Below are positions 19,097 to 33,491 of a DNA stretch of 64,000 nt, piece by piece; position 1 is the stretch's first letter, and every line of letters begins with the position of its first letter. The position numbers and the translations under genes were made by a program. The notes under the pieces are model-generated. The model worked only from the letters and a program-made list of their open reading frames with translations, did not search any database and was not told the DNA's origin. The DNA comes from Blastocladiella emersonii ATCC 22665 (lineage: Eukaryota; Fungi; Blastocladiomycota): NCBI GenBank assembly GCA_025594325.1, contig JANHCV010000001.1, positions 4,402,001-4,466,000 on the forward strand. Direction: 5' to 3'.

Positions 19097-20900
19097 TTAC
19101 ACGATCTCCTTGACCTTCTGCGTGGGGCGGTACGAGTCGAAGTGGTCGACGACCTCGGGCGAGTAGAACAGGTCGCCCATCTCCTCAAGCGACTTGCCCT
19201 TGGGCTCGGGGAGCCAGAACGTGAGCAGGAGACCGCCGATCATGCAGGCCGTGAAGATACCCAGGATCAGCGACATGTGCTCGCCGTCCTTGCCCTTGAG
19301 CTGGTCGAAGCCGAAGGCGGCAACGATCGCACCGGCCTTGCCGGCCGCAGCCGAGACACCGTGGCAGCGCGAGCGGAACTTGGTCGGGAACACCTCGGCG
19401 GGGAGCACGTAGGTCGTGGCGTTGGGGCCAAAGTTGAAGAAGAAGTTGGCGGCGCCGCAGATGACGAGGAACCACACGGTGCCCTTTAGCTGGTTGAAGA
19501 AGATGGTGAGGACGAGGAAGATGGCGGTCAGGAACGTGAACCCCATGAGCTGGATCTTGATGCGACCCATCTTCTCGATCAGGAACACGGTGAACCAGTA
19601 GCCGGGAACGGTGCCGCAGAGCGACAGAATGAGGTTGCCGATCGACAGGTTGAGGAAGTACTCGTAGGCGTTGGCACCCGAGTCGTAGCCCATGAACTTG
19701 AGCAGGTCCGACTGGTTGAGCTGGACACCGTAGAAACCGACATCGAGGAGGAACCAGCAACCCGCGGTCGCGGCGAGGACCTTGCCGTTCTTGAAGTTGC
19801 CGAACACCTGCTTGAACTCGAGGTGCGCGTACTTCTCCTGGAGGTAGCCGGGCTCACCGGGCTGGCGCGCGTTGGCCGCGAGGTCGAGCATCACCTCCTC
19901 GTCGCCGTTCTTCATGGCCTCCTCGGCGGCCTTGACGGCCTTGAACGACTCGGACTCGGGCGTCTGCAGGCGGTGGTAGAGGCCGACGAGAGCGGGGATC
20001 ACGCCGAGGAAGAGCAGGATGCGCCAGACGCCGTCGAAGCCCTGCGTGTACGCGGCCTGGTTGTCGGGCGGCGGCATGAGGTACGGTTTGCTGCCGAGAA
20101 TGGTCAGGACACCGGCGAGGGACGCAACGAGAATACCGACGCCCTGCATAGCGAAGACAGCGGCCTGGAGGTGGAGGGGAGGACGGTCAGTTTCGAGTCG
20201 TTTTGCGTCGGATCTTCGCCCAACTCGCTCCGAATCGTACCAGACCGAGTCCACGAGTCTTCGTGACCGAGTTTTCGGACGACACCGAAGCCGACAACGG
20301 ATAATCACCCCTGTGGGAATTTTTCGTTTTCGTTAATATATGGGGTCAGGGGAAGTGGTGGTGGTCGGTGGTGGTCGGTGGTGGTCGGTGGTGGTGGTCG
20401 GTGGTGGCCATGGCCGACCGACCCGGGCCACCCCAAGTCACCCTCGAGTCAGAAAAATGACCGTACCCAATACCCACGCCGAGAACGAAACGCCAGAACG
20501 CGAGGATCGGGCCGATACCGATGGGGGTCTTGGTGTCGGCGGCGGTCGAGGTGTTGATGGTGGCGACGATCATGATGATGAGGACGAGCGAGAAGATGGC
20601 GCGGCGGCCGAAGCGGTCGGCGAGGTAGCCGAACGTGAGCTGGCCAATGAGGGTGCCGGCCTGCGTGGCGGCCTTGAGCAGCGAGGTGGTGGTCTTGGGC
20701 ATGTCCGAGGCCTTGGCCGGGTTGGAGTTCGGCACGAAGAACCACGAGTAGGCGATCATGGGGATGGCGAGGTTGACGACGAAGATGTCGAAGGCGTCGG
20801 TTGCGAATCCGATGCCCGAGACGAAGATGGTCTTGAAGTTGATGCGCGTGGCCTTGCCACTGTCGAGCTCGGCGAACTCGGCGGCAGCAGCGTTCGTCAT
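19097..20900 (-). CDS. PHO84: Phosphate:H+ symporter (MFS); 3 exons (20900-20467, 20310-20241, ~20165-19097)
   Basis: SGIGFATDAFDIF, FGYLADRFGRR, spliced GIGGDYPLSA..E..TRG..AAVFAMQG, WFLLDVGFYG, FFNFGPNATTYVLPAEVFPTKFRSRCHGVSAAAGKAGA. Confidence 0.93.
20355..20407. repeat. Intronic minisatellite (GTGGTCGGTG)n in PHO84 intron 1
   Basis: Three exact 10-bp units plus degenerate flanks, visible directly in the sequence. Confidence 0.9.
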
Positions 20901-21597: not shown

Positions 21598-21699
21598 GAG
21601 TCGCATGATGAGGGCGAGAAAACGTTTTCGTGCTCGAGGCAGCTCAGCCGGCGTTGCATCACCGCATCACTTGATCACCACGCTGATCTGAAACGACTC
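21598..21699 (+). ncRNA. Candidate orphan box C/D snoRNA
   Basis: Box C ATGATGA 21605-21611, box D CTGA 21688-21691 (a second CTGA at 21683), terminal stem GAGTCG/CGACTC. No rRNA-complementary guide recognised. Confidence 0.3.
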
Positions 21700-21935
21700 G
21701 CGACATCGACGCGTCTCGCACCGCGTCCCGTAATACACCGACCAGGCTGTTCGGCCGGCCGCTCGAACGAATGTATAAGAATGCACGAAGCTAAAGTGGC
21801 GGGTCTAGGCCGAAGGCGGGGCCTTCGATCGAGTATTTATTTAGTGATCAGAGTGGTGATCCCGTTTCACGCTGGACGCCCACAGCAACGGCTCGCGTGT
21901 GATCACGCAGTGGCGCTCCGCGACCACCGCGTCTG

Positions 21936-21942
21936 CATAAAT
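21936..21942 (+). promoter_or_regulatory. TATA-like box of snoRNA unit copy 1
   Basis: CATAAAT about 28 nt before the start of the near-identical block. The equivalent position in copy 2 is TATAAAT (32029-32035, minus strand). Confidence 0.5.
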
Positions 21943-21999
21943 CTTCCGTGCTGACCCACACCCGCAGACCTGGTCCTTGGATCAGTCCACTTCGGTGGG

Positions 22000-22151
22000 C
22001 CAACACGAACTGCCACGGAGCCCGGTTGGACAATGACCGAGGCTTTGTCCAAAACTATAGTTGTGATGTGAGAGCCACACGTCCTATAGGAATCCCCAGT
22101 GAAGGTCGTCAAAAAGAGAGACCCTGGGGGGCTGACACAGGACGGATACTC
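22000..22151 (+). ncRNA. snR34: Box H/ACA snoRNA, snR34/U65(SNORA65)-like, copy 1
   Basis: 3' hairpin: lower stem CGTCCT/AGGACG, upper stem TCCCCAG/CTGGGGG. Pocket strands ATAGGAA (22086-92) and GCTGACA (22131-37) pair around LSU UGUCGGC-UC-UUCCUAU (yeast Psi2880). AUA box at 22146-48, 15 nt from the pocket. 5' hairpin contains CTGCCAC, complementary to GUGGCAG 3' of yeast Psi2826. Confidence 0.8.
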
Positions 22152-22189
22152 AACTTACGTTGCTGCTTTACGTGACCGCTTGAGACGAT

Positions 22190-22287
22190 TCGATGCAGAT
22201 GATGACCATGGCTTACGCCAGTCGAAACTAGCCCAGAGGGCCGTGTTGTTTCAACGTTAACCATCTTTCGGGGCTGACACGCATCGA
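22190..22287 (+). ncRNA. snR39B: Box C/D snoRNA, snR39B/SNORD2-like, copy 1
   Basis: Box C ATGATGA 22199-22205, box D CTGA 22274-22277, terminal stem TCGATGC/GCATCGA. Guide ACCATCTTTCGGG is complementary to LSU CCCGAAAGAUGGU; the 5th nt upstream of box D pairs with the G equivalent to yeast Gm805. Confidence 0.88.
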
Positions 22288-22473
22288 TCAACAACACACC
22301 GTCCGGCAAGAACACCTTGCCATGCGTTGCTACTTTGGCTCACTCGACATTCGGAACGAGATGAACGCGTCCTCGATCGCATTGTGAACCCACACTCGTT
22401 TCGACGTCGTCGGTATCGCTCCTCCTGCACTTGACGAGTTTCGCGACACAGCTTACGCCACCACAAGCATGTA

Positions 22474-23680
22474 TCAACAAAAGTCGTCCGTCGCGGCGAG
22501 AAACGCGAGCGCCGCCTTGGCCATGACCAGCGAGCAGTCATGCGCCGCGTCCGGGTCCGTGACCATGGACAGCCGCTCGTCCGCCACGCCTGCAAGCCGG
22601 TACACAGCCTCGAGCGCGGCCCAGAACCCAGCGCTCGCGTCCACGGGCACGAGCGTGTCGCGACCGCCGCCAAGAAACTGCACCCGCGGGAGAGCGCGCG
22701 GACCGCGATCGTGCAGCAGCAGCGGCACGCGGTGAACCGGATCGACGCGGCGCACCAGCTGCGCCAGCGACGGCGGGAACGCGACGTGCCACGGCGGCAG
22801 CTCGCCCTCGGGCTTGCGCGCCGCGAGCTTGGTGTACCGACCGCGCATGAGCGTTTCTAGCGAGAGTGAGGGGTGAGGTGAGCCGAGTTGGGTGAGAGAT
22901 CGTCAGCGGGAGGACGCGTACCGTAGTCGCCGCAGCCCACGAATCCGATAATCAGGTCGATGCGCGGGTCTACGCGGTGGGATCGTGAGCGCTCGAGTCG
23001 AGTAACCAGTCGAGATTGCCATTCGCACCGTTAAGTCCGGCGATAAACGACGCGTGCGCGCCGAGACTGATGCCCGACACGCCCCACGCGACGGGCGGTG
23101 CGCGGCCGTCCACCTCGAACCGCGCCGGGAGCTGGTCGATCAGGAACGACACGTCAAGCGCTGTCCCGCGCCTGTCGTCGCGATCGGCGCGCGTTAGCGA
23201 ATGCAATACCGACGAGTAGGTCAAGAAAGTCGGTACAGACTGGATCGAGTACATGTCGACGGCGTGCATCGGGTTGCGCGTCGCGCCCGTCCACCCGCAG
23301 TTCCCCTGCTCGCGCACAAGGCGCCCGCCGTGGTTGCGCTGGTCAAACGCTACGGCCACGATTGGTAGCTGGTCCCGCGATCGCGAGCGGCCGGCATAGG
23401 CGCGGCACATGGCGTCCATCTCGTGCGCCGTAGCTACACGGTCGTTTGAGCTCCGTCACGTCAGATCGCTGTTCCGCTCGCGTACATAGCCGTCGAGCAG
23501 ACACGCACACTGGCGGCCGTGCAGGCAAAAGATGACGCGGCACGGCATCTTCGCGTCGGCGCCGGTCAAGCGCGACAGGCCGAAGACACGGAGCGCGATG
23601 CCGCCCACATCCCACTCGTCGACGGCCGCATCCTTGTGCGCGGTCGGGATCAGCGACGTGAACTCGACTGAACCATTCAT
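22474..23680 (-). CDS. Uncharacterised fungal alpha/beta-hydrolase; 5 exons
   Basis: IFCLHGR, AFDQRNHGGRL, GTALDVSFLID, nucleophile elbow GISLG, DPRID..IGFVGCGDY, GGRDTLVP (Asp), AAHD (His). All introns GT-AG. Confidence 0.85.
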
Positions 23681-30202: not shown

Positions 30203-31052
30203 GGCGGCGTCACAGTTCACCGACTGGTTTTCATCAGCTTCATTCGTAGGCCGTGCAAGCGGCGGGTGGGGTGAGAGGTCGAAGGGAGCGCGAGTGCCTC
30301 TCGCCGCGATGTGCGGTGGTGTGGCGAAGCGCGCCGTATCAAAATTTAGCGACACGTGCAGCGCGCGACGCTGTCGTTTGCGGCAATGCCCTCGACATGT
30401 ACTCAAAATGACACGATGCAATGGAGTCGCAGGCGTGGCATAATGTAGTTTATAAGTGTCGTGTGGTCTCGTACGATCGCCGATTCGTCGGGGTCGTCGC
30501 TTCTCCCCTGGCAGCCGCGTCGCCACGATACGCGGGATGGTCGCGTGTGATTTGCCCCCGCTCTTCGCGTCGCCCGCGGCTGCTAGGCCAGTCGCCGATG
30601 GTGGCTTTGTCGTCCGACCAGCGCAACCACGTCAGACATCGAGCGCCGCGTTGATCCTGCGCAGCACTTCTACTGCTGCTCGGCGAGGGCGGGCGACGAG
30701 CACTGCCGCGTTCAGCCTTTGGCTGGGTAAAGGTTCGCTACGCCGGTGGGTGCGGGTGCAAGCGTAGAGATGTGAGCATGGTGGGTTCGCACCCGCGCTT
30801 GAGACCGCGAACTGGCCACGATTGCGACCTCGACGCGCCATACGACTGTTCTCTCGACACGGCCGAGTCCGGGCTGCTTGCGTTGAGCGGGGATATGGAC
30901 ACGCGTGGGCTCATGCTTCACGGGCCGTGCGGGAAACTTTGTGGCTAGAGAGTGCGGAGACGGAAGCGCGAAGCCGCCAAGGAAGCGAGATCGCGCGGCT
31001 CGAAGCTGAGCATCCTCGCGCCTCTCTCGGCTCACCTCGTTTTCCTCGCCAG

Positions 31053-31462
31053 AAACGCTCATACGAGGGCGGTACACCAAGCTTGCGGCGCGCAAGCCCG
31101 AGGGCGAGCTGCCGCCGTGGCACGTCGCGTTCCCGCCGTCGCTGGCTCAGCTGGTGCGCCGCGTCGACCCGGTGCACCGCGTCGACCCGGTGCACCGCGT
31201 CGACCCGGTGCACCGCGTGCCGCTGCTGCTGCACGATCGCGGTCCACGCGCTCTCCCGCGGGTGCAGTTCCTCGGGGGCGGGCGCGACACGCTGGTGCCT
31301 GTGGACGCGAGCGCCGGGTTCTGGGCCGCGCTCGAGGCCGTGTACCGGCTCGCGGGCGTGGCGGACGAGCGGCTGTCCATGGTCACGGACCCGGACGCGG
31401 CGCACGACTGCTCGCTGGTCATGGCCAAGGCGGCGCTCGCCTTTCTCGTCGCGACGGACTGA
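31053..31462 (+). pseudogene. Orphan copy of the hydrolase last exon, with an internal 18-bp triplication
   Basis: Acceptor CCAG at 31049-52, then TLIRGRYTKLAARKPEG..AAHDCSLVMAKAALAFLVATD*. No homologous upstream exons are present. Confidence 0.8.
31160..31213 (+). repeat. Tandem repeat CGCGTCGACCCGGTGCAC x3 (RVDPVH x3)
   Basis: Three exact units here versus one unit in the intact gene near 22735-22752. Confidence 0.95.
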
Positions 31463-31675
31463 TCACGTCGTGTTTATACACGTACACGCATGTGATCCAA
31501 CCACCGTGTGATGAACGGGTTCGTGAGAGCGGGATGACGGATGCGACGGCGTCGTTGTGGGGGAGCGAGCGGGACCACGGCACTATCAAGGACGCGCTCA
31601 TCTCGTTCCGAATCTTGGATGAGGCCAAAGTAGCAACGTATGGCAAGGTAGTCTTGCCGGACGGTGCGTTATTGA

Positions 31676-31773
31676 TCGATGCGTGTCAGCCCCGAAAGAT
31701 GGTTAACGTTGAAACAACACGGCCCTCTGGGCTAGTTTCGACTGGCGTACGCCATGGTCATCATCTGCATCGA
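31676..31773 (-). ncRNA. snR39B: Box C/D snoRNA snR39B-like, copy 2
   Basis: Boxes, guide and terminal stem identical to copy 1; one substitution seen inside (GGCTTACG vs GGCGTACG). Confidence 0.85.
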
Positions 31774-31819
31774 ATCGTCGTAGTCGCGAATAAGGTCACG
31801 TAAAGCAGCAACGTAGGTT

Positions 31820-31971
31820 GAGTATCCGTCCTGTGTCAGCCCCCCAGGGTCTCTCTTTTTGACGACCTTCACTGGGGATTCCTATAGGACGTGTGGCTCT
31901 CACATCACAACTATAGTTTTGGACAAAGCCTCGGTCATTGTCCAACCGGGCTCCGTGGCAGTTCGTGTTGG
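31820..31971 (-). ncRNA. snR34: Box H/ACA snoRNA snR34-like, copy 2
   Basis: No difference from copy 1 seen across hairpins, pockets and the AUA box. Confidence 0.78.
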
Positions 31972-32351
31972 CCCACCGAAGTGGACTGATCCAAGGACCA
32001 GAACTGTGAGTGTGGGCCACCACGGAACATTTATACCGAGTGCCCCGCGGCGGCGGCGCGTGGGAGGGCGAAGGAGGAGTGGCTGAGCCGTTCCTTGCGT
32101 GGCGTGACCCCACGTTGGCCGTTGTCAGGGCCGGCTGAACTTGCAACTACGCTCGCGACCCGCGATGTTGATCGACCTCGAATCTGCCGGCCCGAGAAAA
32201 GTCCGGCACCACGACCACGACGCAGCTCATGTATCTCCGAGCCTGAGGCTCTCGCGACTTGTTGCATTTCTTCCGTTCCGGCGTCCCTGGGCGTGATACA
32301 TAAGGCCGACCTGCGCTCGGTCCGGCCTCCTCGACAACAACCATCACGACC

Positions 32352-33491
32352 ATGTATCGTTCCAGCCTTCGACTCGCGTCTTCCACCCGACCGCTGCTCG
32401 CGGTGAGCCCGGTCGTCCCTGCGATGCGCTTCGCGGCCCCGCTGGCCACCGTGGCGCCGATCGCCGTCCTCGGCCGCGGCTACGTTACGAAGCGGCCTGT
32501 CAAGCGCCAGCAGCATCAGGCTCGGACCCCGAAGCCGTCCACGACCATGGCCACCAGCTCGGCCGTCGACAACCTTCCCGCTGCCCCCGCCGCCGAGACT
32601 CCCGCTCCTCCCGCCGCCACGACCCCCGCTCTTCTCGCCGACACCCCCGCCGTCCCCGCTGCCGCCGCGCCCGCGAGCTTCATGGACAAGCTGCGCGCCT
32701 TCTTCGCCAAAAACTACCACGGCGTGTGCGTGCTGCTCAAGGAGGACTACCCGCGTTACCGCGCGCAGCAGCTCATTCCCGAGTCGCAGTGGACGCGGCG
32801 CGACCACGTGTTCATGTCTCGCGTGCGTTCGGACCTGCGCACGCTCGCGCCGTTCGCCGTATTCGTGTTGCTTCTCCCCGAGGCGATCCCGTTCCTCATC
32901 CTGCGCGGCATGGTCCCGAGCACGTGCCTTGACGCGTCCGACGTCGCCAAAGCGCGCGCGAAGCGGGTCCCGGTGCGCGACCGGATCGCGGGGAACCTGG
33001 TCAAGGCGCTGACGACGCGCAAGACGGTGTCCGGGTTCAACCCGGCCTCGCTCACCACGGCCGCGGGCGTGCGGGACATCACGGTGCGGTACGGCGCCGA
33101 GTTCGACCCGCGCGGGCTGAAGCGCAAGCAGCTGGCGTTCTGCCTCGACTTTCTCGGCGTGTCGCCCTTGTTCCCGCACCCGTTCGGCCTGGCCGCGCGG
33201 CTGGCGCGCACGGTCGCGGAGCTCGAGGCCGACGACCGCCGGATCGTTGCCGAGGGCGGGCCGCGCAAGCTGACGGACGCGGAGCTCGCGGCGGCCAGCG
33301 AGGCGCGCGGGGTGTCGACGGTGGCCACCGACGGCCGCGCGGCGCCGTCGCGTGCGCAGCTCGAGGCGTACCTCGCGACGTGGATCGAGATGAACACGGC
33401 GACCAAGCCCGGCGTGCCCAAGCCGCTCGTCGTGTTCGCGCGCATCGTGCAGTACGAGCGACTTGCGCGGGCGCTGGAGGGTAAGGCGTAG
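32352..33491 (+). CDS. LETM1-domain (LETMD1/Pnt1-like) mitochondrial protein; single exon
   Basis: Arg/Ser-rich presequence; LTRR-like WTRRDHVF..RVRSDLRTLAPFAVFVLLLPEAIPFL..VPSTC; LEADDRRI..LTDAELAAASEARG. Confidence 0.8.
   Translation: MYRSSLRLASSTRPLLAVSPVVPAMRFAAPLATVAPIAVLGRGYVTKRPVKRQQHQARTPKPSTTMATSSAVDNLPAAPAAETPAPPAATTPALLADTPAVPAAAAPASFMDKLRAFFAKNYHGVCVLLKEDYPRYRAQQLIPESQWTRRDHVFMSRVRSDLRTLAPFAVFVLLLPEAIPFLILRGMVPSTCLDASDVAKARAKRVPVRDRIAGNLVKALTTRKTVSGFNPASLTTAAGVRDITVRYGAEFDPRGLKRKQLAFCLDFLGVSPLFPHPFGLAARLARTVAELEADDRRIVAEGGPRKLTDAELAAASEARGVSTVATDGRAAPSRAQLEAYLATWIEMNTATKPGVPKPLVVFARIVQYERLARALEGKA

Follow-up and report, generated by a model that had tools for sequence, protein, structure and literature searches.

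A two-snoRNA unit of mixed class in two inverted copies in Blastocladiella emersonii, and a motif downstream of small-RNA genes in its genome

We analysed a 64,000-nucleotide (nt) stretch of the Blastocladiella emersonii ATCC 22665 genome (GenBank assembly GCA_025594325.1, contig JANHCV010000001.1, positions 4,402,001 to 4,466,000 of the forward strand), hereafter the window, with positions counted from its first letter. It carries a stand-alone unit of two small nucleolar RNA (snoRNA) genes of different class, an H/ACA-type RNA followed by a box C/D RNA, and this unit is present in two copies, termed A and B. A first-pass annotation of the window, made from the letters alone, had described the mixed-class pair, and our analysis confirmed that observation. 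From 5' to 3', the unit comprises a TATA-like box, an H/ACA-type RNA of ~182 nt, a spacer of 39–47 nt, the C/D RNA, and a trailer; each of the two RNAs is followed by the motif CGTTGCTRCTTT, starting at 22158 and 22325 in copy A and occupying 31813–31802 and 31638–31627 in copy B. The features of the unit are as follows, LSU denoting the large-subunit ribosomal RNA (rRNA).

21936–22340, plus strand: copy A, whole unit, as read from the window sequence
31627–32035, minus strand: copy B, whole unit (TATAAAT 32035–32029; H/ACA RNA 32001–31820; motif 31813–31802; C/D RNA 31772–31677; motif 31638–31627)
21936–21942, plus strand: TATA-like box CATAAAT of copy A, corresponding to TATAAAT in copy B
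21970–22151, plus strand: predicted H/ACA-type snoRNA of copy A, snR34/U65-like; predicted 3' end at 22151, 5' end approximate
22010–22016, plus strand: CUGCCAC, probable remnant of the snR34 5'-pocket strand; perfect 7-nt complement of GUGGCAG just 3' of LSU U2963–U2964
22086–22138, plus strand: pseudouridylation pocket of the 3' hairpin, with strands AUAGGAA (22086–22092) and GCUGACA(C) (22131–22138)
22152–22190, plus strand: spacer between the RNAs, devoid of TATA-like sequence; 47 nt in copy B
22158–22169, plus strand: internal motif CGTTGCTGCTTT, G variant, 6 nt past the predicted H/ACA 3' end
22191–22286, plus strand: box C/D snoRNA of copy A, snR39B/SNORD2-like
22305–22321, plus strand: trailer hairpin GGCAAG-loop-CUUGCC, directly 5' of the terminal motif
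22325–22339, plus strand: terminal motif CGTTGCTACTTT plus GGC, A variant, preceded by the hairpin at 22305–22321

Every element of the proposed layout was recovered at its given position, including the TATA-like box, a structured leader (small hairpins at 21971–22000), a spacer of about 40 nt (39 nt in copy A), and a second copy on the minus strand with RNA bodies ~99% identical to the first. One of the proposed RNA sizes needs correction: the conserved H/ACA block is ~182 nt long rather than ~150 nt. A repeat search and MAFFT alignment placed the copies in an inverted duplication of ~0.93 kb (21932–22864 against 32039–31045). They are inverted relative to each other and 9.3 kb apart, and a whole-genome DNA search found the unit as these two copies only.

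The first RNA is predicted to adopt the hairpin–hinge–hairpin–tail fold of H/ACA RNAs. Behind the leader hairpins lie a 5' hairpin (22004–22065), a hinge, a 3' hairpin (22080–22144), and an AUA box (22146–22148), the two main hairpins being more stable than shuffled sequences (z of −2.5 and −2.4, respectively); the entire 206-nt H/ACA region folds at a z of only −1.2. The 3' hairpin has a 6-base-pair (bp) lower stem (22080–22085 with 22139–22144) and a 7-bp upper stem starting at 22093, with a further 4-bp extension. Targets were searched in the organism's own rRNAs, with the LSU taken from contig 17. The pocket of the 3' hairpin forms 7 + 7 bp with this LSU (...UGUCGGC-UC-UUCCUAU...), leaving U3017 and C3018 unpaired, as the first-pass annotation had claimed for the uridine equivalent to yeast psi2880. 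Shuffled pockets reached the same score of 14 in 3 of 2000 trials, and the runner-up site across the small-subunit rRNA (SSU), 5.8S, and LSU scores 9, which puts U3017 ahead by 5 bp.

As box and pocket criteria, we used ACA (or AUA, AAA, AGA) three nt from the 3' end and a target uridine 14–16 nt from the box. The AUA directly follows the lower stem; perfect identity between the copies ends at 22154 and the motif begins at 22158, the 3' end itself being a predicted one. AUA is an accepted variant of ACA, and the eukaryotic ruler is 15–16 nt (PMC7991803, PMC6984369). Here, the AUA box lies 15 nt from the pocket top, which fits this ruler and supports the reading of the 3' hairpin as a guide for U3017. 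Base pairing thus predicts that the 3' hairpin guides pseudouridylation of U3017, which lies in the peptidyl-transferase-centre region of the LSU and corresponds to the human U65 site. In yeast, the counterpart is psi2880, guided by snR34, which has psi2826 as its second target (PMC5699541). The 54-nt spacing between U2963 and U3017 equals that between yeast 2826 and 2880; the yeast equivalence of both rRNA sites was drawn from a literature table, the conserved local sequence, and this spacing, in place of an alignment to yeast rRNA. In the 5' hairpin, one pocket strand, CUGCCAC, retains its 7-nt complementarity, the second strand forms only 3 bp, and the pocket lies 19–24 nt from the hinge box. 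This 5' pocket is probably a half-decayed ancestral psi2826 pocket that no longer guides. Free and box-anchored scans for other targets of the 5' hairpin gave only GU-rich matches at chance level.

The second RNA has the hallmarks of a box C/D RNA: a canonical C box (AUGAUGA, 22199–22205), a canonical D box (CUGA, 22274–22277), and a 6-bp terminal stem (22191–22196 with 22281–22286) present in the minimum-free-energy fold. The 13-nt guide that had been proposed for the G equivalent to yeast Gm805 is present at 22260–22272 (ACCAUCUUUCGGG): it forms 13 Watson–Crick pairs with LSU 949–961, which none of 1000 shuffles equalled, and G952, which is the G in CCCGAAAG, is paired with C22269, the fifth nt before the D box. 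The organism's LSU therefore has the target sequences of both RNAs. From this pairing, the C/D RNA is predicted to guide 2'-O-methylation of LSU G952, whose yeast counterpart Gm805 is guided by snR39b (PMC5699541) and whose Neurospora crassa counterpart Gm785 is guided by the intronic CD47 (PMC2780460). The best D' guide, 9 nt complementary to SSU 40–48, was equalled by 158 of 300 shuffles; in the absence of a significant D' guide, we treat the C/D RNA as single-guide. Additional paralogues of the C/D guide were sought, and none was convincing. Comparison with the Rfam families named in the first-pass annotation gave a divided outcome: snR39 (26.4 bits, E 0.02) and SNORD2 (21.6 bits) were indeed the top matches of the C/D RNA in a permissive scan, but both were sub-threshold, and no snR34/SNORA65 match was obtained. 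Across the whole 64-kb window, no Rfam match reached gathering thresholds, and the permissive scan found the C/D RNA only.

Comparison of the two copies demonstrated that conservation is concentrated in the RNA bodies. The alignment begins at the TATA-like box, sequence further upstream being unalignable (41% identity), and identity is 76% from the TATA box to the 5' end. The H/ACA bodies are identical at 182 of 182 positions, with 185 nt unchanged from 21970 onward, and the C/D bodies at 95 of 96; the intervening spacer is 72% identical and contains an 8-nt indel outside the motif. Identity is 90% in the trailer, where the hairpin stem is retained in both copies and the loop has changed, and 58% in the intergenic sequence. 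The claim of diverged flanks accordingly holds on the upstream side, but the 3' flank includes a co-duplicated open reading frame (ORF) at ~95% identity.

This ORF (124 codons, 22474–22848, minus strand; copy at ~31045–31460) lies outside the RNA unit and is convergent with it, and it matched no Pfam family. It differs from its copy by 19 synonymous and ~2 genuine non-synonymous codon changes, a pattern suggesting that the ORF is itself under constraint. Taking the synonymous changes as a neutral-rate yardstick, a rough estimate of ~20% divergence, ~36 changes would be expected in the H/ACA body and ~19 in the C/D body; 0 and 1 were observed. This result points to purifying selection on both RNA bodies, in agreement with the first-pass claim, and the divergence of the spacer between near-identical RNA bodies fits selection on each RNA better than a conversion tract. 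As a separate observation, the ORF copies differ by a 36-nt in-frame indel (~22735 in copy A against ~31140–31175 in copy B), which corresponds to two additional repeats of a tandem unit of 18 nt (CACGCGGTGCACCGGGTC-like).

These data also bear on whether the unit might be a fortuitous resemblance or a pair of decaying pseudogenes, its identity between copies stemming from recent gene conversion or an assembly artefact. With two sequences only, covariation is lacking, and the genome is rich in inverted duplicate pairs, some of them near contig ends. The two guides are, on the other side, independently significant and address sites modified from yeast to human; flanks and spacer have diverged and RNA bodies have not; and the duplication arms lie 4.4 Mb inside the contig with different outer neighbours. 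We regard such an origin as very improbable.

Both copies are intergenic, and neither lies within a protein-coding gene, so that the claimed absence of a protein host gene stands. Their neighbours are as follows.

19097–20900, minus strand: MFS transporter gene, divergent neighbour of copy A, which lies between it and the convergent ORF
32352–33488, plus strand: LETM1-like gene, divergent neighbour of copy B, which lies between it and the copy of the ORF

The sole conserved TATA box is located 28 nt upstream of the conserved block, and TATA-type boxes (CATAAA, TATATA, TATAAA) occur at a similar distance from the 5' ends of the genome's U3, U1, U2, and U4 genes. Given a single conserved TATA box and a short, unconserved, TATA-less spacer, co-transcription of both RNAs from this box would be the most economical reading. 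A different element, RCCACAACC, is found ~55–80 nt before the 5' ends of the U1, U2, U4, U5, and U6 small nuclear RNA (snRNA) genes (loci L088–L093 and L106–L109) and looks like an snRNA proximal sequence element; some snRNA genes of the RNA polymerase II (Pol II) type also show a TATA-type box no more than ~50 nt from the 5' end. Upstream of the unit, this snRNA-type element is not clearly present.

A host transcript could also be non-coding. Clustered C/D snoRNAs of N. crassa and Candida mostly reside in introns of non-coding hosts, and homologues of our C/D RNA appear to be intronic in RPL7 in Dikarya-like metagenome contigs; by analogy, the unit might belong to a spliced, UHG-like non-coding transcript that releases the C/D RNA from an intron. 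Inspection by eye revealed no convincing splice sites around the C/D RNA, however: the copies have only GTTGCT and GTGACC as shared GT sites, and a clear branch point is missing. Such an arrangement would also place the H/ACA RNA in an exon at the extreme 5' end, and the motif after each RNA offers a release route independent of splicing. We therefore consider an intronic origin improbable.

Upstream of copy A, 230 nt before its TATA box, lies a further candidate box C/D RNA (21598–21705, plus strand; AUGAUGA at 21605, CUGA at 21689, GAGUC/GACUC terminal stem). Copy B lacks this candidate, no motif follows it, and its best rRNA complementarity, 9 nt, was equalled by 185 of 300 shuffles, making it an orphan at best.

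The motif that follows each RNA of the unit is over-represented. Allowing up to one mismatch, the window contains 6 matches against 0.17 expected, and exact matches in the whole genome number 76, the reversed control giving 11. The flanking positions, which were not part of the search string, are biased as well: among 65 distinct sites, T occupies −2 in 47, and purines occupy −1 in 57 and +12 in 53, amounting to a preference for CCUR upstream and for a purine, often GGCC(C), downstream. At the sites inspected, small RNAs lie upstream of the motif. Two Rfam-confirmed U3 genes carry it 2–4 nt past their 3' ends, and two further loci resemble U3 copies; it also follows SNORD57-like and snR52-like C/D RNAs, H/ACA-like RNAs, and several C/D RNAs with 13–15-nt rRNA guides adjoining CUGA. 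A hairpin such as that at 22305–22321 often stands just before the motif, with similar hairpins at many loci.

Independent support came from snRNA genes, which were located by Rfam searches of the genome separate from the motif search. The motif, or a variant with 1–2 mismatches, was found 8 nt downstream of both U2 genes, 1 nt downstream of U5, directly at the end of U4 (0 nt), and 32 nt downstream of two U1 genes, where a hairpin precedes it. The three U6 genes, which end in T runs, lack it. The element thus has the distribution of an snRNA-type 3' box, occurring after Pol II snRNA genes and not after U6, which is of the RNA polymerase III type. We infer that the motif may serve as a 3'-end processing signal of Pol II snRNAs and snoRNAs. 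The broader proposition, that (CCUR)CGUUGCURCUUU(GGCC) is a sequence-defined 3'-end signal of essentially all Pol II snRNA and snoRNA genes in this early-diverging fungus and also punctuates multi-snoRNA precursors in place of yeast RNase III hairpins, strikes us as somewhat more probable than its negation.

Two refinements were tried and set aside. A fixed rule by which internal motifs are the G variant and terminal motifs the A variant is true in six unit families, but counter-examples exist, leaving a tendency only. Complementarity of all motif loci to rRNA at a length of at least 11 nt gave 19 matches against 12 for a downstream control, no better than the control; matches were informative only at 13 nt or longer, where six distinct loci remained. 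The motif string returned only unrelated primers in the searchable literature. A search for Integrator subunits found INTS2 as the best Pfam match of one ORF, at 18–20 bits against a cut-off of 25, and no match for INTS3.

Two side observations concern sequences near the motif. A second U1-like gene (L106, 44 bits) has a different element, GTTGTTGATTT, downstream; the same element also precedes C/D RNAs at L040 and L041 and may be a variant of the 3' motif. A multi-copy element conserved over more than 380 nt at five aligned loci (L026, L028, L052, L054, and L057; L029 duplicates L028) has at its end an Sm-site-like A(U/G)UUUUUGG, which lies ~12 nt upstream of the 3' motif. It matched no Rfam family at E up to 0.5 and differs from the genome's U1, U2, U4, and U5.

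The arrangement RNA–motif–RNA–motif recurs elsewhere in the genome, in the following motif-punctuated units.

L072: C/D RNA + C/D RNA
L011: candidate H/ACA RNA + C/D RNA, the latter snR52-like
L074: candidate H/ACA RNA + C/D RNA, the latter with a 14-nt guide to SSU 159–172
L006: array including an snR54-like RNA
L019: further multi-RNA unit

These units are relevant to the possibility that the two RNAs derive from adjacent, separately transcribed genes, the internal motif being a true terminator and the C/D RNA starting from a compact or internal promoter of its own. Motifs of this kind also end the monocistronic U1, U2, U4, U5, and U3 genes, and two tandem motifs follow a single RNA at L058 and at the U3 locus L031, so a second RNA need not follow a motif. 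Separate transcription is difficult to reconcile with RNAs so close together and with a TATA-less spacer whose divergence and indel leave no conserved promoter element visible. In addition, a C/D RNA begins 10–70 nt past a motif at L011, L006, L072, and L074, which suggests that read-through is normal. Separate genes therefore appear unlikely, if less so than an intronic origin.

Taken together, the evidence favours a TATA-driven, stand-alone Pol II snoRNA gene, present as two functional inverted paralogues, that yields one H/ACA-then-C/D precursor processed through the motif; we assign this reading a probability of roughly 0.7. The unit very probably consists of real genes for ordinary functions in an organisation that is unusual for fungi. 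Under the proposed mechanism, a single precursor would carry the H/ACA RNA first and the C/D RNA second, and the element (CCUR)CGUUGCURCUUU, situated 0–40 nt past Pol II snRNA and snoRNA 3' ends, would act as a 3'-end processing signal. A cut at or near the internal motif would free the H/ACA RNA, the same cut would provide an entry point for 5'–3' trimming up to the C/D ribonucleoprotein, and the hairpin-preceded terminal motif would end the unit.

Several findings weigh against this reading. Monocistronic snRNA genes end with this motif too; transcription could therefore stop at the internal copy, in which case the C/D RNA would need its own promoter. No orthologous unit was retrieved from other species, and the comparison is one of two near-identical copies without covariation support. 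The C/D RNA scores under the Rfam gathering thresholds, with 26.4 against 40 bits for snR39 in a test of RF01197 and RF01299, and 21.6 against 37 bits for SNORD2. In the H/ACA RNA, the 5' pocket has only 7 + 3 bp at a non-standard distance, and the hinge AUGUGAGAGCCACA (22066–22079) contains no ANANNA H box, the nearest sequences being AGAGCC(A) at 22071–22077 and AUGUGA. Finally, no Rfam H/ACA family was matched at E up to 10 in 21800–22450, so similarity to the snR34/SNORA65 model was not seen.

Compared with known guides, the H/ACA RNA resembles snR34/SNORA65 (U65) in addressing the same LSU uridine through its 3' pocket (GGC-U-C-UUCC, yeast psi2880) and in having a 7-nt 5'-hairpin strand complementary to the sequence just past the psi2826-equivalent U, the targets being 54 nt apart as in yeast. 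It differs in lacking detectable Rfam similarity and a canonical H box, in the half-lost 5' pocket, in having AUA for ACA, in ~30 nt of additional 5' leader hairpins, and in the second snoRNA downstream. The C/D RNA, like snR39B, SNORD2, and N. crassa CD47, is a single-guide RNA of ~96 nt whose D-box guide would place the methyl group on the same G. Unlike snR39B and SNORD2, it is below Rfam gathering thresholds and lies downstream of an H/ACA RNA, and unlike CD47 and the metagenome RPL7-intron homologues, it is not intronic. A metagenome pattern scan retrieved eight snR39B-like RNAs, seven in apparent RPL7 introns (judged by eye) and one after a tRNA; these homologues share the 3' half of the C/D RNA, the RPL7-intron ones including its TGTTGT...TTAACCATCTTTCGGGGCTGA tail. 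In one pattern scan, none of the eight had an snR34-like hairpin upstream. The exceptional case, on contig Ga0160505_101775 (L082:1200–1520, minus strand), comprises an apparent tRNA gene with an snR39B-like C/D RNA within ~20 nt downstream of it, a layout equal to the dicistron type described as plant-specific.

In genomic organisation, the unit is similar to S. cerevisiae polycistronic units (snR190–U14 and snR72–78; Rnt1, Rat1) in being a hostless Pol II unit with short spacers. Yeast snoRNA spacers are cut at AGNN-capped hairpins, in contrast to the sequence motif that follows each RNA here. The fungal clusters described so far, in yeast, N. crassa, and Candida, hold C/D RNAs only, unlike the present unit, and are often located in introns of non-coding hosts (N. 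crassa: PMC2780460). Mixed C/D and H/ACA clusters without a host gene are known in plants and trypanosomatids (PMC2780460); they share with our unit the presence of both classes and the missing host gene, and differ in lineage. No report of a mixed H/ACA and C/D cluster in fungi was found in the searchable literature. The motif, in turn, resembles the metazoan (Integrator-dependent) and plant snRNA 3' box in being a short element a few to ~40 nt past Pol II snRNA 3' ends and absent at U6. It is unlike the 3' box in that it also occurs after snoRNAs and inside multi-RNA units, and the metazoan and plant 3' box consensus is unrelated to it in sequence.

Inverted duplication is not confined to this locus. 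Inverted pairs 7–50 kb apart are formed by many small-RNA genes and by at least one ORF, some of the pairs being identical and near contig ends, for example:

C18:121735 (plus) and 129326 (minus)
C11:1755494 (plus) and 1775232 (minus)
C2:26774 (minus) and 37388 (plus)
C8:20916 (plus) and 32405 (minus)
C18:13806 (minus) and 24419 (plus)

The pattern seems pervasive and not particular to the unit, whether it arises by inverted segmental duplication or by fold-back assembly in the vicinity of contig ends.

The first-pass annotation had considered the unit probably unannotated, which agrees with the literature: we found no snoRNA annotation or study for Blastocladiella in searchable sources, and snoRNAs are not mentioned in the paper on the ATCC 22665 assembly (PMC9730499). 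As orthologues of well-known families, the two guide RNAs were to be expected and, taken alone, fill an annotation gap; of greater interest is the 3' motif, a by-product of the analysis that was previously undescribed. A hostless mixed unit resembles the arrangement in plants and trypanosomatids and suggests that, at the base of the fungi, genes were organised more flexibly. The motif after Pol II snRNAs and snoRNAs leads to a testable model for precursor cutting and bears on the evolution of small-RNA 3'-end formation between the animal Integrator-type and yeast Nrd1/Rnt1 systems. If it is a general 3' signal, it would be the fungal equivalent of the snRNA 3' box of animals and plants, with an Integrator-like or a new factor as its possible reader. 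Searching for it would then be a practical way to locate all small Pol II RNA genes of this organism, including genes of kinds as yet unknown.

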